Shown here piece by piece: positions 1 through 31,085 of a DNA stretch of 51,293 bases. Each line of letters begins with the position of its first letter. Positions within the stretch are counted from its first letter, which is position 1. Location of the stretch: NCBI GenBank assembly GCA_002269645.1, contig NIVC01004299.1, positions 1-51,293 of the forward strand, written 5' to 3'. The translations under genes were made by a program, and so were the position numbers. The stretch comes from Macrostomum lignano. Lineage: Eukaryota. Below the pieces are notes generated by a model, which saw only the letters and a list, made by a program, of their open reading frames with translations, was not told where the DNA came from and searched no databases.

Positions 1-3000
1 TGGAAATACTCCACTTTTACTGGCCTGTCAACGAGGATCAAAACAGTTGCTGACACTGTTGCAGAAACTAGGCGCGGACTTTAGCCATGCCAATCAGAAA
101 GGCAACACACCGGCGCTATTGCTCAGTGCATAGGAAACCTGCAACTGCTGCAGATTGTTCATAAAGCTGGTGGAGACTTAGACCATCCAAATTGGAAGGC
201 GATACTCCTATTCTGATGGCTTGTCGATACAATCACTTTAGCGTGGTCAAGTTCTTTAGCGATCATGGGTGCACGATGGACTGTGCGAACTATCTGGGGC
301 AAACCCCAGCCTTTTTCTCAGCCAGACATGCAAAGAAAGAATTGCTGCGCTTCCTGGTGGAACAAAAAGCGCCTGTTGATGACGAGACGACCGATGGAAT
401 GACACCCTTGCTAGTGGCAGCTAAGGCAGACCACACAGAGTCAGTCAAAATATTGTTGAGATCGAATTGCCGAGTGGAACAAGTCAACTCTGAAGGCCGA
501 AATATCGTCTCATTTTCCGCAATCAACGGCAATGTGGAAATGCTAAATATGGCAATCGAAAACAAAGCCGATCTTCTCGTACGCGAAACGTCGGGAAACA
601 CTGCAGTAATTGACGCCTGCCGATATGGCAGACTAGAGGTTTTGGAAATTCTGTCGAAGCAAGCTTGCCCTCTGGACGCCAAGAACTACGAAAGCAGAAG
701 TGGGTTGCACTTAGCAGCTGAATTCGGGTTCATCAAAATCGCGAATTTTCTTCTTGAAAAGGAAGTCAATTGCAACTCCCGCGACAAGCTGGGCAACACT
801 CCGCTGATGCTAGCCGCTGAAAAAGGCTTCGATAAAATTATTCAGCTTCTCAATCAGAAAGAATGCGACGTGCACTTGCACAACAAAGAGGGTAAAACTG
901 CGTTGCACTTCGCCAGCCTAGGAAACAACACTCGAAGCATACAGCTGTTACTCATTGCGGGCTGCAACCCTATGCAGACTGACAATGCAGGTGCTACACC
1001 TCTGATGCTCGCCTGCCAAAGTAGCAAACCAGAAGACAAAAATTCAAATGAGGCCTTTAAAATGCTTTGCGAGTTTTCGGCGACCGATGGACGCCGGTCA
1101 TTGTTCTTCTATGACAACAGGATGCAAACCTGCGTTCACTACGCAGCTGAAGTTGGTCAGTACCGTATTCTAGAAGAACTACACAATCTTGGATTGCGAA
1201 TGGATGAGCCGAACCGAGACGGCGAAACACCACTCATCATAGCCGCTAAAGGGCGGTATAGGAAAAGTGTTGAATTCTTGATTACGAAATGCAGTGCTTC
1301 AATATCGGTCGTAGACAATAAAGGTCAGTCTCCAGTTCATAAGGCGGCGTTGAAAGGGCACTTGCCTGTCGTTCAACTGCTCGAGACCAACGGAGCAGAA
1401 ATGGACCGGCCGGACAACTGCGGACGGACGCCTTTGCTGCTAGCCGCAAGTCGCGGTTTTGATAGCATTGTAAAATTTTTGCAGGATAAACGCTGTATTG
1501 ATAAAATAGTCTGTCGCGAACGAAACGAGAACATTTTGCACTTGGCGGCGATAGGTGGTCATACGACTATCATAGAAAGACTTAAAGACAGACAGGATCT
1601 TGTCGAATCGTTGACAACTGAAGGAGAAAGCTGTCTTACCTTGCTATTGAAGTCGCGGGATTGTCCGGATCTGGCTGCCTTATTACTGACTAAATTTCAT
1701 GCGAAATACCCTGACTCCTGTGGTCAAAAAGAGCTGCTGATTGCTGCCAGTGTCGGTCATAAAGCCACTCTGAAAGTCATTCTAAGCCATCCTTGCTGCA
1801 ACAAAGACGCTGTAGACAGTGAAGGTAACTCAGCATTGATGCTGTCTGCCAGAGAGGGTCATCACACATGCGTGCGTCAACTACTTGACTCTGGACTTGA
1901 TCTCAAGCGCCGAAACAACAATGGAGCAACCGCGCTTCATCTCTGCTGCGCCAATGGAAAACGACTTTGCGCTGATTTTCTACTCGATGCTTCCGAAAAC
2001 AAGGGCGTAGAAGAGTCTTTTGTTGACTGGAAAGACAAGCATGGCGACACGGCACTTATTAACGCAGTTCGCTCCGGTCTATCAGGTCTTGTGCGCACAC
2101 TAATTCGCAAAGGAGCCCGTTGGGATATCGCAAACAATCAGGGTTACTCTGCGTGGACGTATGCCTTTTCAAGTCATCGTCTTGATTTTTTGAGCTTCCT
2201 GAAAGAGAAAGGACACCCTCAAGGGACGCTTGAATTGTTGCTGAACGTTTCAAACCTAATAGGAAACTCTAAGTTTGTTTTGGATGTTTTTCAAAAAGCT
2301 TTGTTGCAAAAGAAGCAGGCCTTTTTCGATAAGTTTCTTCTCTTCTTCGCAGACAGAATGACGGATCTGACTCAGCCATGCAGCGACGGCTCCTACCTGC
2401 TGCATGCTTGCTCCGAGATGAATCTTACTTCTGCAGCCAGCAAGCTGCTGAAGGAAGGCGCAGACATCGAATGTCTTGATAGGCAGAATCAGACGCCATT
2501 TCTTCGAGCCGTAGCTAAGAATCGAACTGACATGGCCAAATTTCTGCGCAAAAAGGGGTGCAAAATTTATGTCGTCGACGTAGAAGGTCGAGATGCTTTA
2601 ATGCTTGCCAGCATAAATCGGAACCACGCACTTTTTGATTGGCTGCTTTGCTTGAACCTAAAGGTTGGATTGCAGGACAAATATGGTTACTCAGCCTTGC
2701 ACCATGTTGCTAAGCAAGGAAGCCGTCCAATGTTCAAAACCTTGCTGTTGGAATGCAGTGAGAAAGTGGCAGGCCTAGTTGAAAATAAGCACGGTCTAAC
2801 CATGGCGCATATAGCCGCACGTCGAGGCAACGGCCGATTGCTATTAGAAATAGGGAATTCTATCCATCGAAATCTTCTCAAGACCACGCCTGGAAAGCCG
2901 TCAACGTTTGGCATCGCGTGTTACCGTGGCTGGACAAATATTGTCAAGAAATTGATAGCCCTAGGTCACAGCCCGCCAGTTACAGAGATGTCGCCTTATA

Positions 3001-5377
3001 TTGCAGCTGCTTGTGCTGGCGGTCATCTGCAGGTTTTGATCGAATTGCTTAAAGACGGCTCTGTAAACCCCTCGCGCAGCGTATTTCAGGCTGCGGGGCG
3101 TCACGGAAAGCTATCTGTGGTGGATTATCTGCTAACAACATTCCCAGAAAACAATAACAGAAACGACATTCTTATTGCTGCTGTTGCTCAAGGGCATTCG
3201 CACATTGTGCGTTACATGTTGGATCAGAAAATTTCAGTTGACCAGATGGACGATAGGCAGAACATGCCTTGTCACGTTGCTGCTCTCAGAAGCCACGCGT
3301 CTCTGCTGCCAAGCTTGGTCTGCGGTGAGCTGCACTCGGCCCCACTAAATGGCCGTCGGCGAACGCTCCTTCATCTAGCCTGCATCGGTGGTCAGGAGTC
3401 TGTAGTTCGGCTGCTGCTATCAAATGCTACTGACGAGTTCATAGCAGCTGAAGATGAAGACAAATGCTCTGCATTACTGCACGCTTGCAGCCAGGGCAGT
3501 AAAGAAATAGTTGCGTTGCTGCTACAGCAAAACAGCGTCAATCCAAATAGCTGCGGAGGGCCTCATGGTACTACCGGTGTGCATCTGGCATGTCAGGCGG
3601 GCCGTCAAGACCTGCTTGAAGTTCTGGCAACAGCTGGAGCTGCTCTGGACGCAGCTGATTTAGAGGGATCAACTGGCCTGTTGATGGCCGCAGCCCGTGG
3701 CCATGCGGATGTAGTTCGATACCTCCTAGAAAACGGGTGTAAATGGGATGCAGTTAATAAGTATGGGGCTAACGTGATTCAACTGGCTGTGAGTGGCAAT
3801 CACATGAGCATATTGACTATTCTTTGCGAGCACAACTTTCTACAGCCGCAGTGCTTTGCTAACCAATGCCCCGATGCTCAGCTGGAAGTTGGACACCCCA
3901 TTGGCAGTTCCGCATCCCCGGGCGATGAAGACTGCGCCTTAGCCTACAACAATCTCGGCTTATGCAAAGAAATGAAGCTGGGAGCTGAAAATGCGGATGT
4001 GGTTGAAGAACCAGACGCTGGCCCTGAAGCTGGTGAATCTGCATCAGTCGTCAATTCTGAAGGATTGGCTGTTCATGCGGGTATCAATGACGACGAAGAT
4101 GAAATTAACGACGTTGGGTCATGGATTGAGTCAAGAGGCGGCAGAGCCAGCGGAGCTGCTTTTTCAACCAGACAGCTATCGGTCACTAGTTCGAATTTTG
4201 CCAGGTAAAATTTTATATATTACCGTACGTACGATTTACTGGGAAAGTAGATTTTAAAATAGGACATAGCAGATGTGCGTTTTTGACGTCTTTGGATCTG
4301 ACTATATCGATTTAGTCTCGTGCCTTAACAAGTTCCCTGGGTGTCATCATACGATTTTCATCCATAACGGTCAACCAGCTTAAGTTAAAATAGAACGTCA
4401 ACCCATCAGGATAAATAAAAAAACGCTTTAATTTTCATAGGTGCGGCACAATCCATGAGCTGGAGGACGGTGCAGATTCCAGTGAGCTGAAACTACGGGG
4501 CACCTTCGGCAGAGCGACAAACTTCTGGACCGTTGAAGCGCAGCAAAACAGCAAAGGTGACTGGCTGGTGAAGAAGTGCCTGAGTTGGTCTGAGACTCCC
4601 GATAGCGATCCTTCAAAGACTTTAGGCAACCTAAAGTTGTTGCTTCGAAAGCTTTACGCATTGAAAAGAAGAGAAAACCGTTTCAGCGACAAGTCTCACC
4701 TTCTATGGCCCATAGAGTTCTCCATCGCTTATCACAGTCGCATTGAAGTGTGCATCGTACACCCGTACGTCAAGTGGCACCTGCTACAGTATCTCGATCA
4801 GCTGTATAGCAATCGAGATCAAGACTCGCGGCTTGAAGATGTGAGCTTTCACAAGTCTATAACGTCGGGCGTGTTGCACGGCCTTGCTGAGCTACACAGA
4901 CGCAGCTTAGTTCACGGATCCCTGACTCTGAAAAGCGTTTACTTGACGCAGGATAAGCGCGTAATGCTAAAAGGATTCGACGGCATTAATGATATTCTGG
5001 CGGAGTTTCTGGAACCGACACGAAATAGACTGCTTCGTGACGCCCACACCAAGGCTCCGGAGCTGTTCCGCGATCGGAATCGTCAGCCTACAAAGGAGAG
5101 CGACATCTGGTCGCTTGGAATTTTTTTGCACCAGCTGGTTACGGGAAAGACACCGTTGGCAAATAAATACGACACTGAGGTGAAGGATTTCTATTTAGAA
5201 GGCCAAGTGGCACGCCTACCAGAGTTTCTATCGCTCGGAGACGCCCAGCTGCAGTCAGTTCTCGCAGGAAGCTGCCGAATCGACCCCAACAGTCGGAAAA
5301 GTGCATGCGAACTGATGGAAATCCTGCGGCCAACTGCAAGACATACTTCCTGTTGTGAGGCTGTGGATGATGATTGA
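1..5377 (+). CDS. Giant ankyrin-repeat protein with C-terminal pseudokinase domain (5' end outside window; exons <1-4204 and 4441-5377)
   Basis: ORF 192-4208 has roughly 30 or more ankyrin repeats (GxTPLxxA...G). Ankyrin sequence continues to position 1 in two other frames (GNTPLLLACQRG; GNLQLLQIVHKAGGDLDHPN), with apparent 1-nt deletions at about 120 and 192. Donor AG|GTAAAA at 4205 and acceptor TTTTCATAG at 4440 join in phase 2 (R-CGTIHELEDG...) into the frame of ORF 4568-5377. That exon has RGTFG, LVKK, LVHGSLTLKSVYL, KGFD, TKAPE and SDIWSLG kinase motifs. Confidence 0.85.
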
Positions 5378-7705
5378 TTTTACTCTAATACTATAACCCT
5401 GTTTATTAAATATTTTATCTAGGTGCATGTAAACTACAATTAATTACTTGATTCAGAAAATGCATGAAATGATGCACCTCACACGAGCTCGCTTTCAATC
5501 AGTTTATTAGGCGCAGTTTAAAGAAATGTCCTTAGGAATTGTTTAGAAGAAACCGAAAGAAATAAAAACCACACCTACAAGAAAAATAACTGCCTCGATT
5601 TTGGAATCCGAGTGCATAATAAGCTCGTATATTGGTCTTTTTGCATTCCCATCAACACTATTTTTGTTGCCAACCGATATTTTTGCAAATAGATATTTTT
5701 CTTTTTAAATGATTCCACTTCAAAATAATTCTGTCCTTCTGCGCTTCAATTTTCTAAATTACACTTCAGATGGAAATTCTTTTGTTAAAATGACAAGCCA
5801 AAAATCGTGTAAATGTGTGAATATTATAACCCAGTAGTATATATAGCAAGCAAGTAGCTCTGATAATATTTTTCTAATACGAGCCTATTTATCCACTCAT
5901 TTTTACGAGTTTTGTTTCAAACGCTTTTTGTTATAACCCCCTTCTTGAGTTATCGAGACTATAGAATTAAGCTTAAGCTTTGATTAAATCTTGTTTTGAT
6001 TCAGATTTGTTTGAAATGTTATTTGACCACCTATTTGACATCCAGACGCAAACCTTGTAAGGTTTCAGGAATAGACTTTCTGGTTTTTTTCTTCTGTTTT
6101 GTATAGTTCAATTTTCGTTAATAGCTCGTATTAAACTTCTTACATTTTTGCAAACCTTCTGAAGACACGTAAATATTTTTTTTGCTTTTTTTCTACTATC
6201 AGTAGCATTAATGAAAAAAATTTATTACAGATTTCAAGCCCCCGTACTCTTTTTACCGATTCTCATTAACATCTGTACGTTTGCAAAGCTTTTTAAGTGC
6301 ACTGACTGATCTGTCTCGAGACCATCAACGACCCACTTCAACGACCCACTTCCGACGCACACGTTATTGATGAACATCGCTAGAAAATGTGTCTTTATCA
6401 ACTTTCAGCGAATGCACGTCAGCTAAATGTCGTTGCATTGTGAAATTACCCATTTTCCAGCGACTTCAATCGACGTTGAAAACGCTGGCCGACGTCACAG
6501 ACGACGGATTTGCTATATTAGATAGCACATTCCACAGTTACAAGCCACAGATGCTTTTTCGCCCTGTGTTGGTACTTCACTTGCTATAGTTGTTGAGTCT
6601 TTCTGACTCCATAGACAACCGTCGGTTCATGGTTTATTCCAATAGAATTAGCTAAATGCTACCTTCATAGAATGGTATGGAGAGGTGTAGTAGCAGTAGG
6701 AAGGTGCATTTTACACATGTTTTTTGACTTTAGGAGCTGCAAGGGAAGAAGACTCACCAGATGTAGCCGCACCTTGCATTAGCAATGGTTTTTATTCTAA
6801 AGCCGCTCTTGAGACATTCAAACAGAAGCAAATCTTTCTTTGCATGGCAACCGTGTTGACTGTTACTCGCTGCCAATCACTTAGTAGGCACTCAGCTAGA
6901 ATACTGATTCAAATGGAGACCCCTCCCAATGGAAGACTTTGGCCATACACGGAAGCAATCTTGGCAAGCTGCGTTTGTCTCGATAGGTATGGGTTGGAAA
7001 CAAGTTTTCAAGACAATTGCATAATTTATAAGCGCTAGCTGGCAGTCGCAATGCGCCCTCCTCCTCCTCAGCAGAAGCAATTGCTGCAGCCAGAAACAAA
7101 GAAATGCTACCCACTGCAAATCTTAGGCCTTCTGCGCGTCAGGTTTGGTTGCAAAAGAAAATCAAATTTTCCAATGCATAGCCACAGTATGCCTGCTATT
7201 TATAATCCACAGAACTTGTGAGAGCAGAGCTCAGTCTTTATAGCTATTATTTCAGTTTATTTCACTTGCAATGTATTTTAATCTACAATTGGATTGGGTT
7301 ACTGTACTGTCATTGGTTTGTAAACCTTAGTAAACAAAGTAGTATCTAGGTACAAGAGTAGACAAGCAGACATAGCTTTAAGTGTAAAAAGATAGCAACA
7401 TAAATACGAGTATTCCGGAAAAATTGAACAGGATCAGGAAATTACAGAATCATATATCTGTATTAAAGAAGAAGCTACTGAAATTGAAAAAAAGAAAAAA
7501 AATCGTCTGTTGTCTTATAAAAGGGCACTTGAAAATTGATTGCATAACAAGTACTTCTACATTCGATGTATACCAATTGATAATTAAATAAATATTGACC
7601 ACGAGAGACATGAAGTATTTGTTTTACGTGTCGAATATTAATTTTGTTTGGTTAGTCCAGCTCCTCTTCACGGCTACTGACCAGTAGTCATTCAATTCTG
7701 TTTAA

Positions 7706-8668
7706 TTAGAGGCTGTAGATCTCAACTTCGCACATCGTAATCGAAAAAGCTTGCAAATTAATCATAGCAAACTTGCTGCCAAAAGCGTTGCAGCTGAAAG
7801 TGGCAATTGAGAAAGCCACCGTCAGGTCAACCCGATGACACTCAACACCGTCCACAGTTAGGGACATCTTGTTCAGTCGGGAGCTGCAGCAGTCCGCCCT
7901 GTTGTAGATGGTGACATGCGAGATTTGAGCAGGCGCGGCGAGTTGAGCCTCCCACCAGCCTGGCTGGCCATTATTGTCAGTGTGAATGCAGCTCAGTCCG
8001 CCCCAGTAGTCTTGGTTCTTATTCCCGTCGAATGCTCTCTCGCAGACTCCGTTTTGCATCACGGAGCTCTGGTTGCAGGCGACGAAATTTAGTTTAGCTG
8101 AAATTTGAAAGTTGAAATTATTAACCAAGATTGTACACAGATGATTACTCTGATTTGGATGAGGTTAGTACTCGTACACAGCGGGAGCGAATGCCTCAGC
8201 CGCCCTAAATGCTGTTAAGTGAGTGCATGGCCAAATATTCTGTGAATCACCCACAGCACTCTGCAGGCTGCTCACAGTCGTTGTGAACTTGGTTTCCACG
8301 TACACGTGGCCCATGTCAGGCATGTTTGTACTTCCTATCTTTAAGTCTATTAAGACTTTAAGTCTGTACTTACTCGTATTCAACGTGTAAACGTCGCATT
8401 CAGCTGAGCTCTCCCAGGCTAAATTATAGAAGGCCGACAGACTGAACAATCGGCAGAGACCCGGCAACCAGGTGAAGCCGAAGCAGCCCGATCTTGTGGA
8501 GCAGTCTTCGGCGCAGTTCAATCTGCCGATGCCGGAAGCAGAGACCATGGCAATAGGGGTTGAAATGCTACGCAATTTGCTTGCCGTGAACACAGTTTTC
8601 GCCGTTGTTGGCCTGCAAAGCCAAAGCAGGATGGCACAGGACAGCAGGTTTAAAACGCGCTTGTGCAT
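7706..8668 (-). CDS. Secreted PAN/apple + F-type (fucolectin) lectin protein, paralog A (exons 8668-8374 and 8097-7706; 228 aa)
   Basis: ATG at 8668 gives a signal-peptide-like MHKRVLNLLSCAILLWLCRPTTA, then PAN-like CAEDCSTRSGCFGFTWLPGLCRLF. Phase-1 intron 8373-8098 (GTAAGT...TTTCAG). Exon 2 has CERAFDG, CIHT, GWW, IYNRADCCSSRL and CEVEIY, the F-type lectin H...RxDxxxxR signature. Confidence 0.88.
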
Positions 8669-8773
8669 TTTTTGACAGTTATTTCGTGAGCTGAGCAGTA
8701 GCCGCGGCAGTAGAGCAAATTTCTGATACATTGAGGCACCGCTTTTCAAATACTTTTTTGGTTTGTTTAACCC

Positions 8774-8811
8774 ATTGGATTGGCTGCGTGTTTTCCGGGT
8801 TTGTTCATTGG
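8774..8811 (-). promoter_or_regulatory. CCAAT box cluster upstream of lectin paralog A
   Basis: Three ATTGG on + (8774, 8779, 8807), about 105-140 bp upstream of the ATG. Paralog B has CCAAT boxes at a similar distance. Confidence 0.35.
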
Positions 8812-11137
8812 TTAGAACTAGTTTGTTGAGGGATGGATTTACATGCAATTCAATTCTGTCACCTGGAAAATGTAATTGGTGCTAGTGCAAGAAAAAATAA
8901 AAGCAACTTTTAGAATAATATAATTCTTAATTTACCTGTCCTATCCCCCGGGACGGCCCAGGGAGCTGCACAACCAGGGGAAGGCATGATACTAGCGCGC
9001 ATGAATGAGTGCCTGCGGGGCCAAAATGAGTGCTAACAACATAAATACCCAAAATAATTTTAGTAATTTAGTCATGTAGAAGAATTTTGGTTTTCTCCCC
9101 CCCCCTACCATAAAATCTATGGCGACACCCCTGGTTGCGCTCTCTTTCTGTATTTTCTATGGCTGATTTTTGTCATTATCGATCCTTCTTAGAAACGTTT
9201 TGTTAAAAAACGTCATTCAGCCATTTGAGGCTAAAAGTCACAGGAAATTCACTTTTTGTAACTTCTATTTGATTAAAATTTTCGTTTTTCCCGGATTTGT
9301 TCCGGTTAATTATGAAGCCAAATCCGAAAAACTGATCAGACACAACTGCAGCTTTTGCATTGAATAATGACTTATCAGCTAAATAAATTTGCATAGTCTT
9401 CAGGAAAACTTTAGCTTTTCTATTTTCTTAATAAAAATAAAGCTGAGGAGAGTCTTTCAGCACTGACTTATGTATTTACTACTGCCAGTAACACTACTTC
9501 TCATATCTAATCTATTCTTTCCTTCCCTCTATCTCACATTCTCTTCTTATCCTTCATTTTATGTTAGGATTCTATTTCAGCATACTTTTCCGGGTCGAAA
9601 GCAACAGGTGTCAACTGTTTGGCATGCGGGACTTCAGGTCTACTGACGCCAGATGGTCTTGGAGAATCACGTGACAGGCACTTTTTTCTCATTTTGACAG
9701 GCCATCAATCACATGAAATTTCGGCCTACATGTATGAGTTCGAATTTATTCCTAGTGTGACGATATTTTGACAGCAGCGAATTTTCCCCTGCAAAGTATA
9801 TTTGTCTCAATCTTAATATTCCGGCAGATTATTTCATTGCAATCTCCTCTTTATTCCCGATCTAATATATATTTTTATGTTGTTTTCGACATGAAATTAC
9901 TGAAACTTCTCCGGGGCCTGATAAGGATCTCTGAGCTTCTCAGGTCTAGCTAGTAACAAGCTCAGTCAATCGAAACCGAAACCACAGGAACAAATCACGG
10001 GCCTGTTGGTTCTTAATTTAACCGCCGATTTTTCCTGCTCAGAAAGCAACCTCGAGTTTGGGCCGCACTCAGCTGTCTTCTACGGAAAGACTGGCCTGGA
10101 GATTCTGTGTCCCCTATTCAGCTCTTCCCCCCAGGTTGCAACACCAAGTTGGAGGACATCATCCTCGGCATCGACTGCTAGAATTCCATTAAGAGTTGGT
10201 TATCCTTCAGCTACGACGAGCTTGGCGTATGCGGTCTCAGGATTCCCTGGCCACCGGCAGTCTCAGTATCTGATAGGTTGGGTGAGAGGCGTGACTTACC
10301 GGACTTAGCTGCAGGGCAGTCACAGGAGCGACCAGTGCCATTTCTGCGCGTATTTTAGTTTTATCCCCAAAACACGGTCCTTAGATGCATGTACGAGTAT
10401 ATGGTAACGACTGTTATGATCGTCTACTGATAAGTAGAAAGTGTAGAACACAGCGCGAAAAACTTGTATAATTTGTTAAATATGCTGGCTATGATTGCCG
10501 AGTTCCAGTTGCGTTTAAACTAAAGATATCGACACTGTTCTGCTGAAAAATACATTTATAGTGGCAGTGTGTTCCAGAATTCAATTACAAGTATAATTAT
10601 AATAAGTACACATTGTGACGCGACCCTTCTTGTTCGGTGCTGACGGCTATGCATTTATCAATAAATGAGTCTACGTAACAAGAAAGTTTAGAATTTTAAC
10701 TTCGACTGATTGTATTTAACCGTATTATATTATTTATTTGAAGACAGGAGTTAACTGTTGCTGTTAAATTATTGGTAGTAAGTACTAAGTATGGCGAATA
10801 GGCACAACGCGGCGGACAAACCAGCAGCACACACGAGCCCAGCGAGACAAGAACACTAGAGAACAAAAATTCGATATAACCCACTTTTAAATAATGCAAT
10901 ACCCGTATTTCTATGAATGATACAGTAAAACAAATTTTATGTATAGAACAAATTTAAGATTTGTTTAATAAATAGTAGTTAGATTAATATAACACTAAAG
11001 AGACATTAATAACACCAAATATTATAAAAAATAAATATCAACATCGTTACACTCGCCTCTCCTCAAAAAACAATACAGCTACTTACAGTAACATCAAAGC
11101 ACATGACCCAAAATTTAATAACAATATAAACTTATAT

Positions 11138-11210
11138 ATTGGCAAAATCAAACACATTGGCAAAAATCGAACACATTGGCAAAAATCGAACACATTGGCA
11201 AAATCGAAGC
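11138..11210. repeat. Tandem repeat, about 19-bp unit x4 (ATTGGCAAAAATCGAACAC)
   Basis: Direct reading. The pattern resembles subterminal arrays of non-autonomous DNA transposons. Confidence 0.8.
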
Positions 11211-12675: not shown

Positions 12676-12746
12676 CCAATCATATTTGGCCAATCAGCAA
12701 ACCGCATGCAAAAAAATAGGACAAAAAATCATTCGTAACTATAAAA
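12676..12746 (+). promoter_or_regulatory. Core promoter of lectin paralog B (two CCAAT boxes and TATAAAA)
   Basis: CCAAT at 12676 and 12690; TATAAAA at 12740-12746, about 70 bp upstream of ATG 12813. Confidence 0.55.
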
Positions 12747-19499: not shown

Positions 19500-19915
19500 G
19501 GGACACAGAGGGGGACACCTTGCGGGCATGCGCTCGCAGAACAGTCGGGAGGGCAGGCAGCAGCAGCATGAGGGGGGTCAGCGCAAGCGCCTGCAGGTCT
19601 TTGATGAGGCAGTCAGTCAAGTCAGGGTGGCTGCCATCAACCGTCGCAGTTTCTCGGTGGGCTGGTGCATCAGGGTCAGGGGCCGGGAAGGGCGCCCAGG
19701 ATCCAGGAGGCAGTGGCCCAGCAGCATCTGAGGGCGCCGGCGCAGGGTGGCGCTCAGGGGCCATCAGAGCATTTTGGTTAGCAGGTGCTCCGGGTAGTGC
19801 AAACCCAGCACATAGCGCAGCAGCGATCGGTACAGCGCGTCCAGGGCCCGCTCTCGCGTGTTGGTCAGCGGCACAGCCTCCACACCGTACAGGAGGATCG
19901 GCTCTACGGCCGCGC
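19500..19915 (-). mobile_element. 5'-truncated non-LTR retrotransposon (RTE-like LINE), post-RT C-terminal fragment
   Basis: GC-rich island. The minus strand translates SAAVEPILLYGVEAVPLTNTRERALDALYRSLLRYVLGLHYPEHL...PLSATLRRR..LLGH, the typical RTE/CR1-group thumb region, with frameshifts. Confidence 0.8.
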
Positions 19916-21295
19916 TATTATGAAATTATTGACTTTGGTTGAATCCTAATCCTAATGAGTCTACTGCTCATAAACTTGTCGAAGTGTCAGCGAGGTACTT
20001 GCCCACTATCTTATAGCATTTTTTGTACTTATGTTTATTGAAAATTCAGCTGAATTTTCTAACAATGTGTAGAGTTTGTTTAAGACGGAATTCAAGCTAG
20101 AGGGAGCTCTACAGAGACCTTAAGATTAAGAAATATCAGTAATCAAAATATCTAAATCAGTCAGTTAAAATTCAAAACATGAGTTTCTGGAAACTTCTCT
20201 GACGCGAATCTAAATGTTGCTGCATGTGCAAATATCAACACCGCACAGATGTACAAGACATAGTTTCTCAGCTCTTTTGTAATTTAATACTGATTGCTAA
20301 TTATTAACGCTAAGTGGGATTTTTTATTTGAAAAATGAAAAAAATGCACTGAATGTGATAGAAAATACTCTCAGCTTTTTAGAAATTGGTTGAGCTAAAT
20401 GGTTATTATACATATTGGTAGAAAATATAAGAAAGAAGCAGATTTTTTATTTAGAATTAAGGTGCAGTTACAAATAGTTAGGTATCAGCACATCAAGCGG
20501 ACATGTAATTTTACATCTTGGATATAATAGTTGATCTAAGACTGAATACGCTCGTATTTGCAAAAAAGCTACAAAAAGTTATTTTGTAGAAGTTTTCACT
20601 TGCTATTGTTAAGGAAAAAACGATAAAAGTTCGAAGTTCGCTGATTGTGAAAAAACAAGCGAGAAACAAAAATAATATATTATGAAAACAAATTGGCAAT
20701 TAAAAGCCTAATTTCTATCGCTCGTATCAATACAGATAATTCTACTTATAAAAGAAAACACCCCTTCTCAACAAAGTTGCTGAGACATTAAAGGGGGATC
20801 GGCTGGCTAAATCCAAATTCAACGAATTGATATTGTATATTCATCAAGAACTATTTATATATATTGGCTAGCAATGGCAGTACAGTGTAGGTGCATGCAA
20901 CTCATAATTTGGCAGAGACAGCGACAACAAACAGCTAGACTGTAAAGGTATTTACAGAAAGAGAGATCAAAAGATCAAAAATGAATTAAAATTAAGCCTT
21001 GAAATTAATTATTATAATCTAATAATAATCTATCCGTGCTTTTAGCTCATTTAAAGAATAAAGAAAACTTGTTTTATAACAACCAAGGACGACTTGAATA
21101 TAATTTAAAAGTAGTCTTGTGAAGTAGTCTGTACGGTAAAATAACACCAGGCTGCTGATCTATTATTTTAGGGAAAACAAATAAAATATGTTTTTTAACT
21201 GTCCCTACAGGCTACGATGTGTGAATTAAGCACATGTACGATTATGGTGAATATAAAGTCTATCAAAAACGACTATAGGAATTTGATTGAATCAG

Positions 21296-22486
21296 TCAGT
21301 CTATTTCAATAAGAGTTGGAATTCGAACCTTTCCATCGGAACCTCTGCGCCGAGGGACACAATGATGCTGAGCGCAAATCGGAAACTTCTTCTTGAAACA
21401 AAAGTCTCTTAGCTTAAACTTCTTTCCCTGTCCTCGAAAAGTTCTCTGATCGAAAGTACACAGAGCGTACCTGAGCTCAAAGTATTTGTCAGCGTGCACA
21501 AGATACACGGTTCCAAATTTGAGTCCTTTTAATATTTCTTTAAACGTGCCGCTGCACTGGCAGTTTAGGCCTGACCATGAATCTGGAGGCTTTTTAACGA
21601 CTTTTTGTACCGGGTTTTCTTTGCACGCGTCGCAGTTGCAGTTGTGCAGCAGTATGTTTTCTCCGTCATTCTGGTTTAAAAAGTTCAAGGGCTTGCTTAG
21701 TTGCCCCTGAATTACCAGACGATGATCTTCTGAGCAGCAGAAGTGCTTTGGAGGTTCAAAATTGACACTCTTCACCGAAATTCCAATCTTCTTGCACTCG
21801 GGTTCGGCTCCAGGATTGACATTTACCTCCTTCTCTATCCGCAGGTCGTACTTTTCTGTTTCACGACAATACACGCAGCCAGGCACACGGAAATCCGGGT
21901 GAAAGCTGACGTGAGTTAAAGCCAAGTACTCTCCGAAAATAGACTCTTTAATATCATTCTTTTCACTGTGATGGATCATCTCGAGCAAGCACGGGATCTC
22001 TGTCGCTTTACTTGAATTTCGAAAAACTTCGAAAGTGAAGTTGGCATCTTTGAGCAGCAGGTAAAGGGATGCAGCTGCCAATCCTTCTGAGTAGCTGTCA
22101 GGGACATGAACCACTGTAGCGTCAGACAGCTTCCATTGGTTTGGGTTGTCTGGAAGTTGATCAGACAGTCTGTCAGCTTCTTGATTGGATCTTTCACGAA
22201 CCACAGGCCTTTCACGAACCACCTCGAATGGTGTTCCTGTAACACATACGCTCTTTCTGAATATAGTGTAGGCTTTTTTGTAAACGGTAAGGAATTTGGG
22301 ATCACCATACTGTCCTGAAGACTCGCTGGCAGTTAAAACAGTTAGTAAGGCAGCAAGTTCGTTGCCGCAAGGCAGATCAGCAAAGTTTATTTCGCACAAT
22401 TCCTTTAGCAGGTCTTCGTTGTAGCGCTCCGCTATGGTTTGATTGGAAGGGTTAATTACATTTGCATTTGGTGCTGCATTGGCCAT
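21296..22486 (-). CDS. Uncharacterised intronless 396-aa protein, Cys/His-rich C-terminal half
   Basis: Uninterrupted ORF in otherwise AT-rich DNA with ATAATGG start context. A splice-acceptor-like TTTACCAG lies about 10 nt upstream (cis- or trans-splicing). Motifs CVYC, CNCDAC, CQC and CAQHHC; no family recognised. Confidence 0.75.
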   Translation of the reverse strand: MANAAPNANVINPSNQTIAERYNEDLLKELCEINFADLPCGNELAALLTVLTASESSGQYGDPKFLTVYKKAYTIFRKSVCVTGTPFEVVRERPVVRERSNQEADRLSDQLPDNPNQWKLSDATVVHVPDSYSEGLAAASLYLLLKDANFTFEVFRNSSKATEIPCLLEMIHHSEKNDIKESIFGEYLALTHVSFHPDFRVPGCVYCRETEKYDLRIEKEVNVNPGAEPECKKIGISVKSVNFEPPKHFCCSEDHRLVIQGQLSKPLNFLNQNDGENILLHNCNCDACKENPVQKVVKKPPDSWSGLNCQCSGTFKEILKGLKFGTVYLVHADKYFELRYALCTFDQRTFRGQGKKFKLRDFCFKKKFPICAQHHCVPRRRGSDGKVRIPTLIEID

Positions 22487-23368
22487 TATACGAGCCTGGT
22501 AAACTGATTTTAGACTTAACAGAGCGTAAGATCGACTCTAAAAGTTAATTTTATAAGGTTGCTTGATTGCAACAAAAATGTTTAAGGAATGAAAAAGTAT
22601 AGCCAAAAAGGTAAATAGCGCTTACTTATGCTTGTCGATCAAAAAAAGATGAAATCAGCAGTTATAGTAGTTATGCAGTTAGGTAGTCAGATAATTGCAA
22701 CTAATTAACCGTAAGTGTTTTTGATCAAAAGAACTTTTGGATATCTGCTCACACTCACTATTAAAATGTATATTCTCCTAAAATATGAGGCAAATGTGAA
22801 GAGAGAATTTCTGTTTAAACCTGCAATAATTTCTGTTTTATATTCAATCAACCACTGTTTAAACAAACTGCAAGGGCTGCTAAATTTCATTCAACACTGC
22901 ACATTCATGCGAAAAGTCTGTCGGGAATTCAGTTGCGGCTGGGGGCAGAAACATATTGTATTTCAACCCCACGCCCATTTGCTAACCCTGGAAAGGGTGT
23001 ACGCATGTATTGGCGTTGGTACTGTACTAGCAAATAGTCCAGCGTATTCTTCCCCTTGGTCTCTCCAATTCCTCCCAGTCTGCACCGCCTCCAGTTTTCT
23101 TTAATGTACGCACATTGATCACGCCATTTTTGCATCCTACCCTGACGCACATTTGCACTTAAGTTATACATGTGGCTGAACTAAATAGAATGAAGTTCAT
23201 GCCCACTGAGACATTACTGCCTTCCACCAGCCTGCCTGTCTGGATCTCTGTCATACAAGCGTATCAGCAGAGAGGCAGAAGAAATAGCACCCCTTATTTA
23301 CACTCTAAAACTCTTAAGCACACCACAGAATTGCAGCAGCAAAAGAGCTTCACTGCTTGCAGAAAGGC

Positions 23369-26300
23369 ATGACTTTGCTTGGCTTGTACGATGGAATTCT
23401 AAACAAGTTGCTTAGTACCTGTGCAATCGCACGCAATGCTGAGCAGCCCCTGCCTCAGACCGCGGGAGACTCTCCATTGCTGAAGTTCTGTCTAGAAGAG
23501 ACAGAAAAATCGAGCTGTCAACTCATCATTCTGCGGGCTGAAGCTGCACACCAGGTCGATGCTGGCTCAGAGCTTTGCTGGACTTCGCCGCATCACCAGG
23601 TTGCTATGAGAGTCTCAAGGCCAATCAAAGACTTGGCAATGGATTCTGGAAACCAGCAAACTCAGCTCATTCTGTACGACTTGTGCCAATTCGCTTTCAA
23701 AAACTTGAAGGAGCTCCAAAAACCTGAACTGAAAATACTCACTAATGAAAAATTGATAATGAGCTTGTTCGACTTCAAGAGACAGCCGGACCATCAGCGA
23801 GTGGAAAATTTCCTTGTGAGTGCCTACCTGTTTATGCACCTTATCCGAGTGCCAGGCGACAGACTTATCACTGTATTTGAAGAGGCAGATAACAGGCTTA
23901 GCATCCAGATTGGTGATGGACCGCGAAGTTCGCTTCGAAAGTTGACTTTCGACTGCAGCACCAAAACAGAGGAGTCTTTCGAGAAACAATTTCACGAAAC
24001 CCTGAGTGAGGGTGGCTCTTCATTGTACATCTGCTTATTCTTTAACGAACTGAAGACTTGCAGCTGGTACCTCAATGAAAAGGGCAAGGACAAGCAGCAC
24101 GATAGGCTCCCGAATCATGACACAAGCTTGATCCAGTTCGAAGGCGATTGCTCGAAGCTGAATATCTCAGTGACAGCCTTCGATAGCGTAGAAGATAAAT
24201 ACAGCAGCTTCCAGATGGAGCTGAGTGCGGATGCAGCATTCTCACCCGATCGGTTTGGAGACGATGAGCTGCTGTCGACTGTAGTTGGTCTCGTTCGAAA
24301 GGTCGTGATGGAGCAGAAGCCGGCCAACCTCTGCCTCGTCTGCCTTACCGTTCCGTGTCGGACCGCCATTAAGTGGTTGGACATCGCTTCCGGCAGGTGA
24401 GTCGCTTATTTTTTTAATTGGGTGGAGCAGGGCTTATTGGATATTTGCTTTTTTACTGTATATACCAAAGAGGAACTGCAAAACTGATTTTAAAATTTTT
24501 GGTCACATTTATTTCACCATGGCTAGTTACTTATTGTGGTTATAAATTGTGATATTTGTAGTCGTATACGAGCGTACAGTGTGTGGGAGTCTTGCTCACT
24601 TTCATCGATATTTTAATGATGCCAATGAGTGTCAAAGCTGTCAATATTTTTCCGTATAAACCGTATTACTTCATTCCGTTGCTGAGTTTACGAAGTAAAA
24701 TGACAGCTAAATATTACAAATTTGAATGTGATTTTCAAAAACGCAAGTGCTTTTATATTTTTCAGGGAGATATCATGTTGTACAGAAGAAGGCCAAACAG
24801 TCCCATGTTCTGATGACGCTCAGTTATCGGTAGGTTTTCCAATATCCATGTGTTATATCGATTTATGTACTTACTACTTATGCCCCATCCGATTCCAACA
24901 ATCAATGAAAATGATCATTTTTCTCTATAAGAAAATTAGTGCCTAGTGTTGATTAATACTAAAAACGAGTAACTGTCTTTGTAATTAAATAAAAAAGTTT
25001 CTTCCAATTTTTCCAGATTTTTCATTCAGCAGCAGCTAGTGGAGATGTTGCAGTGCTGAGGCAGAGACTGGAAGGCAACCGACTATTGGTTAGTGCTCAG
25101 CAGCAGGAGTTTCCACGTCGCACCGCTCTACTCTGTGCTGCAGCAGCTGCTCCAGAAGACTTTTCTCAGGGTCAACAATCGCACACTGAATGTGCGAGCC
25201 TACTCATCAACAAAGGAGCTGATGTTGGAGACTGTGACTCTCGCGGACACTCGGTGCTGCACTGTGCGGTTCTATCTGAAAATGAAGAATTGGTTGAGTT
25301 TCTGCTGAAAAATTCAACTGCAGATCCAAACAGCAGAGACGAGGATGGTCTGACACCCCTGCAGCTTGCGGTAGAGCAGGAGAACGTTGCCATGGCAGAC
25401 CTATTTCTGGAAAGTGGGGTGGATGTCTGTCTGAATCCCGACGGAACCATTGTTGAACTTGTCCAAGCTCTCGACTCCGAAAACTTTGAGCTCGTGAGAA
25501 CACTCCTAGATCATTATCCGGAAGCAATGTCCGACGACCAGTTTCATAAGTACTACTGGCAAGCGTGGAAACTGGATGCGACTCAAATCTACAGTCTTCT
25601 TTTGATGTATGTATGCTCATAGGTTTTTCCAAAAAGTGATTTTTTCCAATCTAATCGAACTGTAAATTTTTATTGGTCACCTTTTTAGATCAAAATATGG
25701 TCTTTCCGACGAAGCGGTTCAGGTAATTTCCCCAGTTTTTCTAAGCACTGATTATATATGAAACACTTTAACTTAAATGTTCTTAATGTTTATTTGCATA
25801 TGACTGTATACTTGTACATTCGAATATTCATGATTGAGAAAAGTTATTGGGTTTGTTGATCAAAGCAGCAATGAGATTTCAAACATCGTAAATCATTCCA
25901 CTTTTTCGCTAAAAACCCATATTTAGGAAGCAACTCTACTCGGACAGCTTGCATCTCAAGGCGATGTCGAGCAGCTCAAATTGAAGCTCAGCATCCACAA
26001 CTGCAACCTCCGAGACTGGGACTGCAGAACTCCGCTCATGTGGTCAGCCATCGCTAGTTGCGACCCCACAGAGGGACATGCAGACTGTGCTCAGCTGCTG
26101 CTCAGTCTGAGAGCGAACCCCAACGCTGCCGATCTTGACGGCAACTCGCCATTGCACTTGGCTGCGGCCTCCAACAATGTGGAAGTGGCGGCGCTGCTGC
26201 TGCTGCACGGAGCCGACGAGAAAGCGAGAAACCGGAAAGGCGCCACTCCGGCTGAGGTAGCCAAGCAAAGCGGCCAGCCGGATGTGCAACTCTTCCTGGA

Positions 26301-29300
26301 GACCGCTGAGGAGCTGGAACGGTAAGAGTACTTTTATAGAAAATGCTACGAGCGTAATAGTTATGGTTGCATACTAAAGTTACAATGGAGCGAAACCGAA
26401 GGTTCAAAATGGAGATTGCTCGTGAGAGGGGCTTCACATTCAGTGGGTCGCCTGAGCAGTTGGGGTTCTATATAGAAATTAAGCTAATAATAATAATAAT
26501 AATGTTTTGAAATTTACGCACAAAAATCCCTGCAAACGGAGAGGAGGAGCAGGCCAAGCTCAGAACGTACATCTGGCCAGTAGGGCACGAACAGGCTCCT
26601 CCCTGAGCACTAATGTCGGTTTCCTCAGGTGCAAACACAGTGCAGACCGTTGTCGCTTCAATATCTTAAACTCTGCAGTCTCAAATCTCCGGTCCAACAA
26701 GCCACCTATTTGAATTTGCGGCTTTTTCCCACTCTTTACTCGACTTTCTCTTGCTTATTGCCAGCTTTCTCGCAGTCATCTGCTTCTGCCTACCTCTACC
26801 TCCGCTTTTCGATATTTTAAATAAACGTTCGAAGTTTGATGAAGCTGCACTGACTGGGCGCTTTGCCTAGAAATACTTTTGCAGTTTCGGGGAGTTTCCA
26901 ACTCAATTAAGTTATTTGTACTTCATAAGAATCCAGTTTCAACTGCTCTAAGAACCCTGGCTTTCCCTCCTTCTACTATTGTAGAAGCTCAGAGGCCCGG
27001 CAGGCAGCCGCACACCGCTTGGATTCGGGCCTCCATCGGTGAGTCTGACCGGTTTGGCTTTCACTGCCGCATTGCGCTTTCCAACAGGCTGGCAGCTTGG
27101 GGCAGAAATTGCAGAAAGAATCAGAAGGGTTGAGATTGGGTTTGACTGAGTGTTACACTCGCAGCTCTCCTGCTTGCTCTGTCCATCCAACTCTAGGCTC
27201 TCAGACGACTCCCAGCAAGACAGGCGCCTGAGCGAGGAGCTGCATCGACTGCTCAGCGAGGCGGGATTCACCGAGAAGAGCGCAAAGTGTCAACAGAGAC
27301 TGACTGACTGGCTGCAAGAAGTCGCTCGAGTCCTCACGCATGATAATAGGTGGATGACGGGCAGCTACGCAGAGGGCTGGGCCAACAGTCTGGTGCAAGT
27401 GAACGGCAAGACAGCTGCAGACTCGGACATTGACTGGACTGTGCTGGTTGCTGGGCGGCAGTTCCATTTGGAGGGGTGCTGTGAAGGAAGATTTGGTTCC
27501 TGCAGAGACACCACTCGGCTGCAGGTCACGGAGGGTCACGTAAAGGTGGCAGTGGGAGCAGGTGAGTGAGGCTGTGTTCAGCATCAGAGTGCAACTGGAA
27601 GCCCAATAACAATCGGCTCAATTTTAAAATCGTAACCGATTGACGCCCAGTCTCCAAAAGCTACGTGTAAATAGTAAAGGAATTTCTCGTTTTAAATTTT
27701 TGCTTTATCCCCACATCATAAATTCCATAACATGCCCCTGCAAGCATTTCAGCGATTATTTTGCTTTATAGCTTTTGACATTCTAAATGAGAATTTGGCC
27801 AAGCTAGCTGAGACCAATGATCATATACACAAGATGGGCCACTCAATAACCACTCATGTGGCCATAGAAGCTAATGTAAAAAATTGCAACTGCGGGAAAA
27901 TCGACTACTGAACTCAATTCCGTCAGTAGTCTCTGCAGTGAATGCATCATTCTCAGTTTGATTGAGAAGATTTTTATTCAATTTGTGAGAAGTTCTATCA
28001 AATTATGTCCCTAAGCTACTGAATTCAAACTTATAAGCAACCCATGTTGGCTTTTTCGCACAAGTGACGAAAAACAGCGGTCGCACTTTCCCTATTACCG
28101 CCATACAAAGTGGCCTATCTAGGGAATATTCGATCTATGGGTGAGACCAGAGAATATCCAGTATAAACAGAATGCCAATAGGGGGGTCTAAAGTAAAGCC
28201 AGTTTTTGTTCCTTCCAGGACTCTACTTTTTGGCCATAGAAACTCCATGAGTTTTAGCAGGCGCATTAAAAATGTTTGCTACTAGCTTGCTTTTAAGACT
28301 AAATTTTGCTAATTGTATATTGTTTTGTTAGTAGGCTTTTTACCATTTACCAGGCAAATTCTCATCAAGCGGGGCTGCGGGGCATGGATGAAGGTATAGA
28401 AAGGATCGCTCATCTAAAAGCGAGTCTAATGGCCAAGACTTCCTAAAAATTGGGATATTCCCCCCCATGAATTTCATTGGCTGCTGGAATTTAATAATAG
28501 TCCACCCTAAGTTCTTAATGGCTAAAGCTTGTGCGCGGGGGAAAATAAAGCAGTTATAGATGTCTAACGTTAATTCACTTAATAGTGACTTTGGAATTTC
28601 CCCGGCGTACTTAAGCTTCGGCCAGTAATAAGAGACTATTATTAAACATCTTTATTAAGCCTCGGGACCATTAAATGCAGCCTCGGATATTCTAACCACA
28701 GAATGTGAATTAAACGGCCTTTATTATACCTCTTAACATTTTTTGGACATAAGTGAAGTTAATTTAGTCATTAGCCAGCTCAGTCCTAGAAAAGTGAGTT
28801 TGATTTAGTCAGCAGTCGGGGTTTACCATAGACTATAGTTAAGAAATGAAATCGATTTAACTAAATAAAACTAATTAGAATAAATTAACTTCACTTGTCC
28901 AAAATAATTGTTGAAAGGTATATTGCGTAATCATTGATTACAGTAGTAGCACTGACACAGGAGCTGAATTAGTTCAATCAACGTACGCGTTCAATTATTT
29001 TCAAACCAACCCAGTTTTTTAAGCTCACCACAAAGCGACTGTTCGCTTACTGCGCTTTGCAGGCAGCCAACCTGCAGTGACAGCCATGGCGTGCGGTGTG
29101 CGGCCTGCACAGGAAACGTGCCATGCGATCCAGTGCTGCAGCAGTTTCTGTGAGGATAGGGTTAAAAAACTGGTTGATAACAGTTATACTGCAGTTTACC
29201 TGGTTCGGGCGACCAGACCGAGCTCGACCAACGAGCTCAGAGTGAGCTTCAGCTTCCAAGAAAAACACATCATGAGACGGCTGAGCACAGTCCAGGGCCA

Positions 29301-30516
29301 GCTGTTCACACTCATCAAGTTCATCTTCAAGAGATACTTGCCGCTCACTCTGGACACACCTGGACTCAAGACCTATCATGCAAAGACTCTGCTCTTCACA
29401 ATGCTGAAAAAGCATGGCACAGATCCTAAGACTGAAGTTTGGCAGCCCCACAATCTGATCGCTCTGCTCAAGGAGTCTCTCGACTTGATGCTGAGCTTCA
29501 TCGACTCAAGCAGCTCGCCCGATGAGTGCATGCCGCACTTCTTCATGCCCGACGCTCCGCTCTACTTCAAGTACGCTGGAATCGGCGGCGACTTCGACAA
29601 CACGAAGGCGAGGGTTCGAGACCGACTTTGTGAACTGAGAAGCGACATCGGCGGAGTGGTCAAGCAGCTGAGGAGACTCGTGAGCCCTCCGCAGTCAGAG
29701 AAGTTCTATTTTCACCCGTTCACTCTGCTGCCTCTGACAGCACCGCCTGCTGTCACGGAGATCAGGAAAGGACTTTATGGCAAAGAGGAGATTTACTACA
29801 AGTTCGCATACGTGTACAGTGTGGTGCACCAGTGTGTGAGCGAGCTGCAGTCCGAATCGATCGACAGAGACACCCTGATGAGGCAGCTCAGTCTCCTGCA
29901 TGAGCTGCAGTGGTGCAAGTCCGCCGTCCTGTGCATGACCGCCATGGCGCATTTGAAGTTCGGAGAATCTGAGGAGGCTGAGAGACTCGCGATGGAGCTA
30001 CAGAGACATCAGGTTGAGTTAGGGTTAAAGCCACAGGATATTCCAAGAGATCGATATGGCCCAACTAAACTGCCAGAAGACTCAGACTGGGCGTGGAGGT
30101 TCTGCCTCCCCTGTGACTCTCCGCCTCACTTCCCGTTCCTTCCCGAGTTCACACAATCTCTATTCACAGCCAGACTTTCGCAGCCTCTCTCCTCTCACCT
30201 GTACGTGAACTTCCGCTGCCTGAGCTGGAGTCTCCAAGCTGAGCTGCTCCGCAATCGCGCACCTGCAATCGCATTCGATCATTGGATTGAACAGCTGCTT
30301 GAAGACCCGGACTTGGAGGAGCTGCTCACTCTGGCTCACTACAGCGACTGCTGCGAGCACGTGGAGCTCAGCCTGCAGCAGATGGAGATGATCAAGAAAG
30401 AGAGACGCGTCGCCATGGAGACGCAGGACGAGGAGAAGATCAGCTCGGTCAGACAGAAGCTGAAGAGACTTAATGATGCAGTAGCAGAAGTCCATCGGTC
30501 GGAAAAGGAAGGCTGA
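23369..30516 (+). CDS. Multidomain cGAS-like receptor (cGLR/Mab-21 nucleotidyltransferase) with about 9 ankyrin repeats and an unrecognised N-terminal domain; predicted 1317 aa
   Basis: Exons 23369-24396, 24766-24829, 25017-25610, 25927-26321, 26985-27038, 27197-27561 and 29063-30516 are all GT-AG and phase-compatible (2,0,0,2,2,1), total 3954 nt. Ankyrin repeats in exons 3-4. NTase GSYAEG...DSDID in exon 6. Mab-21 motifs VYLV, ELRVSFSFQEK, LIKFIFK, LKTYHAKTLLF and PHFF in exon 7. The Mab-21 identity is firmer than the junction to the ankyrin exons. Confidence 0.75.
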
Positions 30517-30989: not shown

Positions 30990-31085
30990 AAGGTTTAACC
31001 ATGATGTCGCTAAATATTATGCATCACTGATCAGTGACCAATCGCTCAAGATCGATGCCTCTCGGATTGCTCCGAAGCTAGTGAA
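30990..31085 (+). pseudogene. Solitary copy of the 33-aa ISDQSLK repeat found at 16450-17700
   Basis: CATGATGTCGCTAAATATTATGCATCACTGATCAGTGACCAATCGCTCAAG closely matches the repeat unit (DVAKYYASLISDQSLK). Confidence 0.75.

Follow-up and report, generated by a model that had tools for sequence, protein, structure and literature searches.

A predicted cGAS-like receptor gene in a structurally variable region of the Macrostomum lignano genome

We have analysed a stretch of 51,293 nucleotides from the flatworm Macrostomum lignano (contig NIVC01004299.1 of NCBI assembly GCA_002269645.1, positions 1 to 51,293 of the forward strand), referred to here as the window. An initial annotation placed in positions 1-31085 an ankyrin-pseudokinase gene, two genes for secreted F-type lectins, a decayed ankyrin-like array, an orphan Cys-rich gene and a gene for an ankyrin protein with a cGAS-like nucleotidyltransferase (NTase), with no housekeeping gene among them, and read this set as a possible signalling circuit of the OAS-RNase L kind. 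The inventory is borne out by the present analysis with two amendments: the NTase gene is larger than had been noted, comprising eight exons and 1331 aa with an unassigned N-terminal exon of 340 aa, and in the lectins the F-type domains are clear, the secretion signal was judged by eye and the sugar motif is found in copy A only. The NTase shows all the sequence and fold features that we checked for a cGAS-like receptor (cGLR). In place of a circuit, we propose that lineage-specific genes which evolve fast probably adjoin one another here, in a region that is structurally fluid and bears transposable elements (TEs), and do not form one machine.

Results

The ankyrin-cGLR gene and its catalytic motifs

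The last three exons of the cGLR gene were set by alignment to paralogs and the rest by inspection of splice sites. All eight are intact and splice into a single open frame of 3996 nt, encoding in order an orphan N-terminus, ankyrin repeats, a cGAS-like NTase and a helical tail. The gene and its parts are as follows.

23357-24396, 24766-24829, 25017-25606, 25689-25722, 25927-26321, 26985-27038, 27197-27561, 29063-30516, plus strand: ankyrin-cGLR gene, 8 exons, 1331 aa, GT-AG introns, in frame
23357-24396, plus strand: orphan N-terminal exon, ~340 aa, joining the downstream exons in frame, codon usage +0.23
25017-26321, plus strand: ankyrin-repeat exons, ~5-7 repeats (Pfam Ank E 1.7e-19 and 3.1e-16)
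27197-29694, plus strand: predicted NTase core of Mab21 fold, with a 1.5-kb intron at 27562-29062 (structure model, Foldseek and profile)
27357-27365, plus strand: T-G-S of the cGLR motif (M-T72-G73-S74)
27426-27434, plus strand: D95-I-D97 of the cGLR motif
29113-29115, plus strand: third acid of the cGLR motif, E157
29695-30516, plus strand: C-terminal extension, ~270 aa, mostly helical, conserved among Macrostomum paralogs (alignment A1)

Searched alone against the PDB by sequence, the two NTase open reading frames (ORFs) gave no match. Because ankyrin matches dominated the result for an untrimmed profile, the alignment was trimmed; the resulting family profile matched cGLR1 (E 6.3e-6), cGAS (7.6e-6), MAB21L1 (0.013) and MB21D2 (0.59) in the PDB, and Pfam Mab-21_C matches the core with E 2.6e-5. 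An AlphaFold2 model built with 17 family sequences has a predicted local distance difference test score (pLDDT) of 79 and a predicted template modelling score of 0.80. Foldseek places cGAS structures in all of the first 17 ranks for this model (E 3.5e-6 to 3.5e-5 at probability 1.0), the top matches being mouse and human cGAS, and MAB21L1 comes next. The C-terminal extension, whose model blocks mostly reach pLDDT 80-95, lies outside the ~390 columns that align to cGAS and has no counterpart in that enzyme.

According to Li et al. (2023; PMC9980059), a cGLR combines structural homology to cGAS with an h[QT]GS motif, a [DE]h[DE]h motif 8-20 residues after the GS and a third acid 50-90 residues further on, and in function makes a nucleotide second messenger when activated by a ligand. 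The predicted fold of the window protein is cGAS-like. G73 and S74 are invariant in 10 family members down to 30% identity, D95-I-D97-W lies 20 residues past S74, and 59 residues separate D97 from E157, a position occupied by Asp in most paralogs. Alignment to coral and mollusc cGLRs by hhalign (probability 98%, E 1.3e-13) places E157 on the catalytic Asp of the coral 'ISVDLVPAL'. Judged by its sequence and predicted structure, the NTase is thus a cGLR in every respect checked. Q163, which had been suspected from its strand position to be the third catalytic residue, was rejected, since its column varies between Q, E, D, H, W and K in the paralogs, curated-complete ones included.

Five M. lignano cGLRs were listed by Li et al. 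and cloned for their screen (PMC9980059, Table S3 rows 89-93), and two of them, PAA93208.1 (BOX15_Mlig001946g3) and PAA68676.1 (BOX15_Mlig016402g1; rows 92-93), are close paralogs of the window gene. The family is therefore already catalogued in this species, and what is mildly new here is an unannotated paralog with a replaced N-terminal half. The actives reported in that study are insect, anemone, mollusc, hydra and coral proteins. That none of the five expressed M. lignano members is among them suggests another reading of the protein, as a non-enzyme: a Mab21-type scaffold or regulator, a protein that keeps the motif for nucleotide binding only, or a copy drifting to loss. The use of Glu as third catalytic residue, in contrast to the Asp of close paralogs, the low confidence of the modelled loops beside the active site and the lack of an annotation for the gene in the NCBI assembly all fit such a loss of function. 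We nevertheless regard it as unlikely, if worth keeping in mind, because paralogs down to 30% identity keep the G-S, the D-x-D and the third acid, Glu is permitted by the published motif, all eight exons are intact and the screen, made with dsDNA or poly(I:C) only and on truncated constructs, is a weak negative.

An apparent exchange of N-terminal modules

Exons 6-8 of the gene are 79-86% identical to M. lignano paralogs, and all close relatives of the NTase ORFs are proteins of this species, none more than 86% identical. The window copy itself is missing from the annotated protein set. In two paralogs (P0001 and P0003) residues 1-150 have no tblastn match in the window, and from residue 151 on they match it from position 26986, in exon 6. 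The orphan and ankyrin exons upstream of the exon 5/6 boundary (window 26985) are unrelated to the N-termini of these two proteins. Since the similarity to paralogs starts exactly at exon 6, the N-terminal half appears to have been replaced, which suggests an exchange of N-terminal modules by exon shuffling at this boundary within the family.

The orphan N-terminal exon has no detected homolog and no Pfam or PDB match, and it resembles neither the NTase profile nor the orphan ORF described below; its single-sequence AlphaFold2 model (pLDDT 36) is unusable. The Macrostomum expansion comprises at least 24 paralog clusters. At three paralog loci (L003, L004 and L006) a second match to the cGLR C-terminus lies within a few kb, which indicates local tandem duplication of the family there.

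The decayed repeat array and the orphan ORF

16450-17700, plus strand: frameshifted ankyrin-like repeat array of 99-nt (33-aa) units (repeat families D1 and D2)
21296-22486, minus strand: orphan ORF, 396 codons from ATG to stop, intronless, 18 Cys of which 14 are in the C-terminal half

The array upstream of the cGLR gene holds four copies in a 99-nt register, after which the spacings become 190, 197, 249, 387 and 348 nt, with the units spread over several frames; the Pfam Ank_2 match is weak (E 1.4e-6). Compared with the colinear locus described below (L009), it has one stop, three 1-nt indels and a ratio of nonsynonymous to synonymous polymorphism (pN/pS) of 0.58. At five of the ten paralog loci (L002, L003, L005, L006 and L007), tblastn placed long arrays of the same 33-aa repeat type immediately 5' of the ankyrin-cGLR gene, and four gene models (P0005, P0006, P0015 and P0020) fuse such an array with the cGLR gene. 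The array in the window is probably what remains of a cGLR N-terminal array that has decayed.

The orphan ORF between the array and the cGLR gene has no match in Pfam or the PDB, and no called gene with exactly its product is on record in the protein collection. Its codon usage in frame, +0.23 bits/codon, equals that of the verified exons and lies clearly above most control ORFs; on this basis it is taken as a real or recently real gene.

The ankyrin-pseudokinase gene

..192-4204, 4441-5377, plus strand: ankyrin-pseudokinase gene, 3' part, with the stop at 5375-5377 and an ATTAAA shortly downstream
4496-4516, plus strand: G-loop remnant RGTFGRA
4565-4576, plus strand: VAIK-type Lys kept, LVKK
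4913-4936, plus strand: catalytic loop HGSLTLKS, HRD Asp lost (HGS for HRD)
4973-4984, plus strand: GFDG replacing DFG

The window contains the last ~1650 of the 2109 codons of this gene, the start of which lies ~460 codons upstream. The intron at 4205-4440 is of the GT-AG type and joins both exons in frame, at a splice junction identical to that of an annotated 2109-aa protein (P0026) encoded on contig NIVC01002488.1; in an exhaustive HMMER search the pseudokinase exon differed from P0026 by one residue. The ORF at 192-4208 is almost entirely ankyrin repeat (Pfam Ank_2 E 1.5e-165), the protein having ~50 repeats, and the last 311 residues have a protein-kinase fold (Pfam Pkinase E 2.6e-13). 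The four motifs above were placed by alignment to PAK4, which also showed that APE and DIWSLG are retained. An active kinase has a catalytic Asp in HRD and a Mg-binding Asp in DFG, and because both are lost here the domain is classed as a pseudokinase.

The closest kinases in the PDB are PAK4, PAK6, MAP2K5, PDK1 and TAO3. Among 1.84 billion representative proteins only P0026 is close, the next matches being 28-32% identical; the seven of these that were scanned are all kinases in which ankyrin repeats are lacking, and several have their kinase domains in tandem. This search gives no copy number, since paralogs more than 50% identical would sit hidden in the P0026 cluster. In a word-index homolog search a yeast kinase was the one match and P0026, although nearly identical, was overlooked; this search was not taken as evidence for absent paralogs.

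Against the NCBI allele, the ankyrin exon has a pN/pS of 0.34 and the kinase exon one of 0.10, values that point to purifying selection on the ankyrin-pseudokinase. Global alignment and three-frame translation revealed two 1-nt deletions relative to L009, both in short homopolymers (CC to C after 128 and GGG to GG after 197), which shift the frame twice; they are either assembly errors or the mark of a disrupted or pseudogenised allele.

These features bear on the circuit proposed initially, in which the cGLR writes a messenger, the neighbouring ankyrin-pseudokinase reads it in the manner of RNase L but independently of STING, and the lectins sense upstream. In its favour, the order of ankyrin repeats followed by a pseudokinase is that of RNase L, the cGLR active-site motif is complete and the pseudokinase is under purifying selection. 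RNase L, however, needs its KEN nuclease, and neither KEN nor any other effector domain follows the pseudokinase: the protein ends 17 residues past the kinase C-lobe, the annotated allele P0026 has the identical stop, Pfam at E<=10 returned kinase families only and no further plus-strand ORF or exon was found downstream. Furthermore, RNase L has 9 ankyrin repeats where this protein has ~50, the PAK/PDK1 type is the nearest to the kinase domain with RNase L outside its top 60 PDB matches, and the frame is broken twice in the window. Together with the lectin and linkage results given below, these observations make the circuit very improbable.

The F-type lectin genes

8668-8374, 8097-7706, minus strand: F-type lectin gene A, 228 aa, two-exon model (PDB FBP32 E 9.6e-23; Pfam F5_F8_type_C_2 E 1.2e-11)
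12813-13107, 13191-13579, plus strand: F-type lectin gene B, 227 aa, two-exon model with the layout of A
7984-7982 (His) and 7900-7877 (RADCCSSR), minus strand: fucose motif of lectin A, intact, aligned to NRGDCCPER of FBP32
13388-13414, plus strand: degenerate motif of lectin B, RAGYSYRMR, with Asp changed to Gly and the Cys-Cys lost

Both proteins consist of a signal-like N-terminus, a small Cys-containing module that is PAN-like (its similarity to PAN_1 being weak, E 0.018) and an F-type lectin domain. The identity of that domain is clear from the best PDB matches, which are striped-bass FBP32 (9.6e-23), a pneumococcal fucolectin-related protein (2j22, 4e-11) and eel agglutinin (1k12, 1e-9). 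The two genes are divergently oriented, 56% identical and joined by inverted-repeat arms (I1 and I2). The sugar motif His...Arg-x-Asp-x4-Arg/Lys is present in A and not in B, and fucose binding is likely to be still retained by copy A alone. In L009 lectin A is absent, and the lectin-domain exon of B is 99% identical at the protein level with pN/pS 0.28.

At each N-terminus, judged by eye, a short polar stretch is followed by a hydrophobic run (MHKRVLNLLSCAILLWLCRPTTA / MHSNYPLIVLLCVALIVGPATA), and the lectins appear to be secreted. No such signal-like N-terminus was seen in the cGLR or the pseudokinase protein, which makes a relay from lectin to cGLR look topologically awkward. Lectins with these N-termini would be extracellular, copy A is dispensable in the other haplotype and copy B is without the binding Asp, all of which speaks against a role for them as sensors of the proposed circuit.

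Structural variation of the region

The NCBI contig NIVC01002488.1 (GCA_002269645.1) contains a locus, L009, that is colinear with the window and ~99% identical to it. Window 1-5475 is 98.96% identical to it and window 12420-20008 is 95.8% identical; because of this colinearity and identity, the window is in all appearance an allele or homeolog of the NIVC01002488.1 locus. The comparison reaches as far as window position 20008, and the cGLR gene (23357-30516) lies beyond the compared part. The order of ankyrin-pseudokinase, lectin B and repeat array is kept in L009. Between the two aligned blocks, ~7 kb of the window (5475-12420), including lectin gene A, stand against 2.3 kb of L009 (16664-18958) in which only lectin B is found, so that a net ~4.6 kb and lectin A are missing from the allelic contig.

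A near-intact Ty3/gypsy long terminal repeat (LTR) retrotransposon, with its ORFs on the minus strand, occupies window 31612-40279, beginning 1.1 kb past the stop codon of the cGLR gene. The insertion looks recent.

31612-32332 and 39560-40279: LTRs of the element, 721 bp, 99.4% identical
38143-39153, minus strand: gag ORF
34508-38077, minus strand: protease/reverse transcriptase/RNase H/integrase ORF, 1189 aa
32926-34626, minus strand: three additional ORFs of the element

The region may be considered to be in structural flux because lectin A and ~4.6 kb are missing from L009, the array is frameshifted and the LTR element looks recent.

Several smaller observations concern the surroundings of these genes. 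In the part of L009 that lies upstream of the window (3874-8298), two divergently oriented DUF7802 genes are found just 5' of the ankyrin-pseudokinase gene. Between the lectin genes, a short ORF at 12153-12410 (plus strand) matches Pfam zf-AD, the zinc-finger-associated domain, right at the cut-off (E 2.4e-6) and may represent a gene fragment of zinc-finger or TE origin; another at 42410-42733 (plus strand), with a weak THAP match just below the cut-off (E 1.4e-4), may be a transposase-derived fragment. A tandem repeat at 15006-15194 has 12 copies of a unit of ~15-16 nt (GAATTCGGCGAATCGG) as well as 32- and 47-nt periods. Position 46823-48041 is a 1.2-kb purine-rich tract of degenerate (GA)n / GAGAAGAGAGGAGA, which gives rise to a marked skew in GC and AT and, on the minus strand, to long but spurious ORFs rich in Ser and Leu. 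Rfam and tRNA scans gave no match.

Gene neighbourhoods of other cGLR paralogs

The flanks of ten further M. lignano cGLR loci, taken to a maximum of 10 kb per side and adding up to 185 kb, were searched by tblastn with kinase probes (the window pseudokinase and two active kinases), with both lectin modules and with the two orphan sequences, the ORF and the N-terminal exon. None of these had a match at any of the ten loci, although a search with three kinase probes may overlook a very divergent kinase. The co-location of cGLR paralogs with ankyrin-pseudokinases that the circuit would predict was thus seen at 0 of 10 loci, in a survey that is partial and not genome-wide. The annotated neighbours at the paralog loci are instead CH/GAS2, Na/Ca exchanger, FMO-like, RRM, ribosomal L6e, dynein heavy chain and amine oxidase-like genes. 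In one UniRef model from M. lignano (P0017) a C-terminal segment of a cGLR is continued by the C-lobe of a kinase that looks active, with HRD and DFG present and 26% identity to the window pseudokinase; either two neighbours have been wrongly merged in this model or the fusion is real.

The same neighbourhoods bear on a looser form of coupling, in which the genes of the window would be biochemically independent members of a co-regulated immune island, sharing chromatin or induction. Three of the five genes belong to families of invertebrate immunity (the cGLR and the two F-type lectins), the absence of any recognisable housekeeping gene from 1-31085 is in keeping with such an island, and so is the shared order of ankyrin-pseudokinase, lectin B and array in L009. 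Colinearity of alleles or homeologs is, however, expected whatever the function, and other cGLR paralogs adjoin housekeeping-type genes (ribosomal L6e, dynein, FMO, ion exchanger). We therefore find a co-regulated island rather improbable, if less so than the circuit.

Discussion

The present study supports one part of the proposal that an OAS-RNase L-like circuit is encoded at this locus. The cGLR 'writer' stands by sequence criteria and predicted fold; the 'reader', the 'sensor' and the circuit that would join them find no support, given the lack of a KEN domain, the lack of linkage at the ten paralog loci and the apparently secreted character of the lectins. The clustering of fast-evolving families in a TE-rich region, which had been offered as the alternative, fits the data better. 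In the mechanism that we favour, the genes would be adjacent by residence in a gene-poor, TE-containing and structurally variable region, and not by functional coupling. The cGLR would act as a cytosolic pattern-recognition enzyme, in which ligand binding would trigger synthesis of a nucleotide second messenger for a receptor encoded elsewhere, and its ankyrin block and orphan N-terminus may serve as exchangeable interaction modules. The giant ankyrin protein would be a non-catalytic scaffold, and the lectins would be secreted humoral binders of carbohydrate.

As a rough estimate, in a genome of the size of that of M. lignano kinase genes number in the hundreds and cGLR paralogs in the dozens, and with such numbers one chance pair within ~25 kb is expected.

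Some points weigh against this account of independent neighbours around a cGLR enzyme. The flanks searched at the paralog loci reach 10 kb at most and the spacing between pseudokinase and cGLR in the window is 18 kb, so that linkage at such a distance is possible. The comparison with L009 ends at window position 20008, between the pseudokinase and the cGLR gene. At least one other cGLR paralog may lie beside a kinase, as P0017 hints, and the five cloned M. lignano cGLRs do not figure among the reported actives.

Two literature findings are also in favour of a pathway without STING. Planarians lack both cGAS and STING (PMC13563047, 2026), and Li et al. (PMC9980059) note that cGLRs may drive STING-independent responses. 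One form that such a pathway could take here is that in which the product of the ankyrin-cGLR is read by the neighbouring giant ankyrin-pseudokinase as a nuclease-free scaffold receptor, the N-terminal modules setting ligand specificity. We hold this to be as improbable as the circuit itself, and retain as the probable reading an adjacency of independent, fast-evolving genes. We found no paper linking Macrostomum F-type lectins, STING or these genes.

The significance of the locus lies in the cGLR family. Most platyhelminths have lost cGLR signalling (Li et al., PMC9980059), and given this loss and the lack of cGAS and STING in planarians, the Macrostomum expansion is a place to ask what cGLRs signal through in flatworms. 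The window offers no candidate receptor for the cGLR product. It does offer a hint, in the exon structure of this copy, that cGLR receptors diversify by shuffling N-terminal modules. Furthermore, since the reading as writer, reader and sensor is backed neither by linkage nor by domain content, a false lead is avoided.

Comparison with known systems

The nearest relatives of the window gene are the M. lignano cGLRs PAA93208.1 and PAA68676.1. The NTase core is shared, including TGSYAEGWANSLVQVNG.TAADSDIDWT, RVSFSFQEK and LKTYHAKTLLF, and the C-terminal extension is common to them. In place of their 33-aa array, linker and ankyrin block the window copy has the orphan 340 aa and another ankyrin block, and its third catalytic acid is Glu where theirs is Asp.

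Vertebrate cGAS and Drosophila cGLR1 are alike to the window protein in predicted fold (Foldseek probability 1.0, template modelling score ~0.5 normalised to cGAS) and share the triad of GS, DxD and third acid. Identity to them is just 12-16%. The window protein adds N-terminal ankyrin repeats and the 270-aa C-terminal extension, and shows no evidence of a DNA- or RNA-binding surface or of a zinc thumb.

RNase L, the 2-5A-dependent ribonuclease, binds its 2'-5'-linked nucleotide ligand through its ankyrin and pseudokinase domains. The ankyrin-pseudokinase protein of the window shares with it the ankyrin repeats and, C-terminal to them, a kinase fold that is catalytically dead. It differs in having no KEN domain and ~50 ankyrin repeats against 9, and its kinase domain is not specifically similar to that of RNase L or IRE1, PAK/PDK1-type kinases being closest. 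No OAS-type writer was identified.

ILK and TNNI3K are scaffolds made of ankyrin repeats and a kinase or pseudokinase domain, and ILK is without catalytic residues. The window protein has the same domain order, and its lost catalytic residues, as in ILK, suggest a scaffold role. The protein, of 2109 aa, has a much longer array of ankyrin repeats than these, and orthology was not detected, the nearest relatives being 28-32% identical.

Finally, the lectins match MsaFBP32 (3cqo) and the Anguilla agglutinin (1k12) in the F-type domain (E 1e-22 and 1e-9, respectively), and copy A shares with these the fucose motif and the Cys-Cys pair. In contrast to them, the window lectins have one lectin domain after a weakly PAN-like Cys module, and copy B has lost the Asp and the Cys-Cys that copy A keeps.

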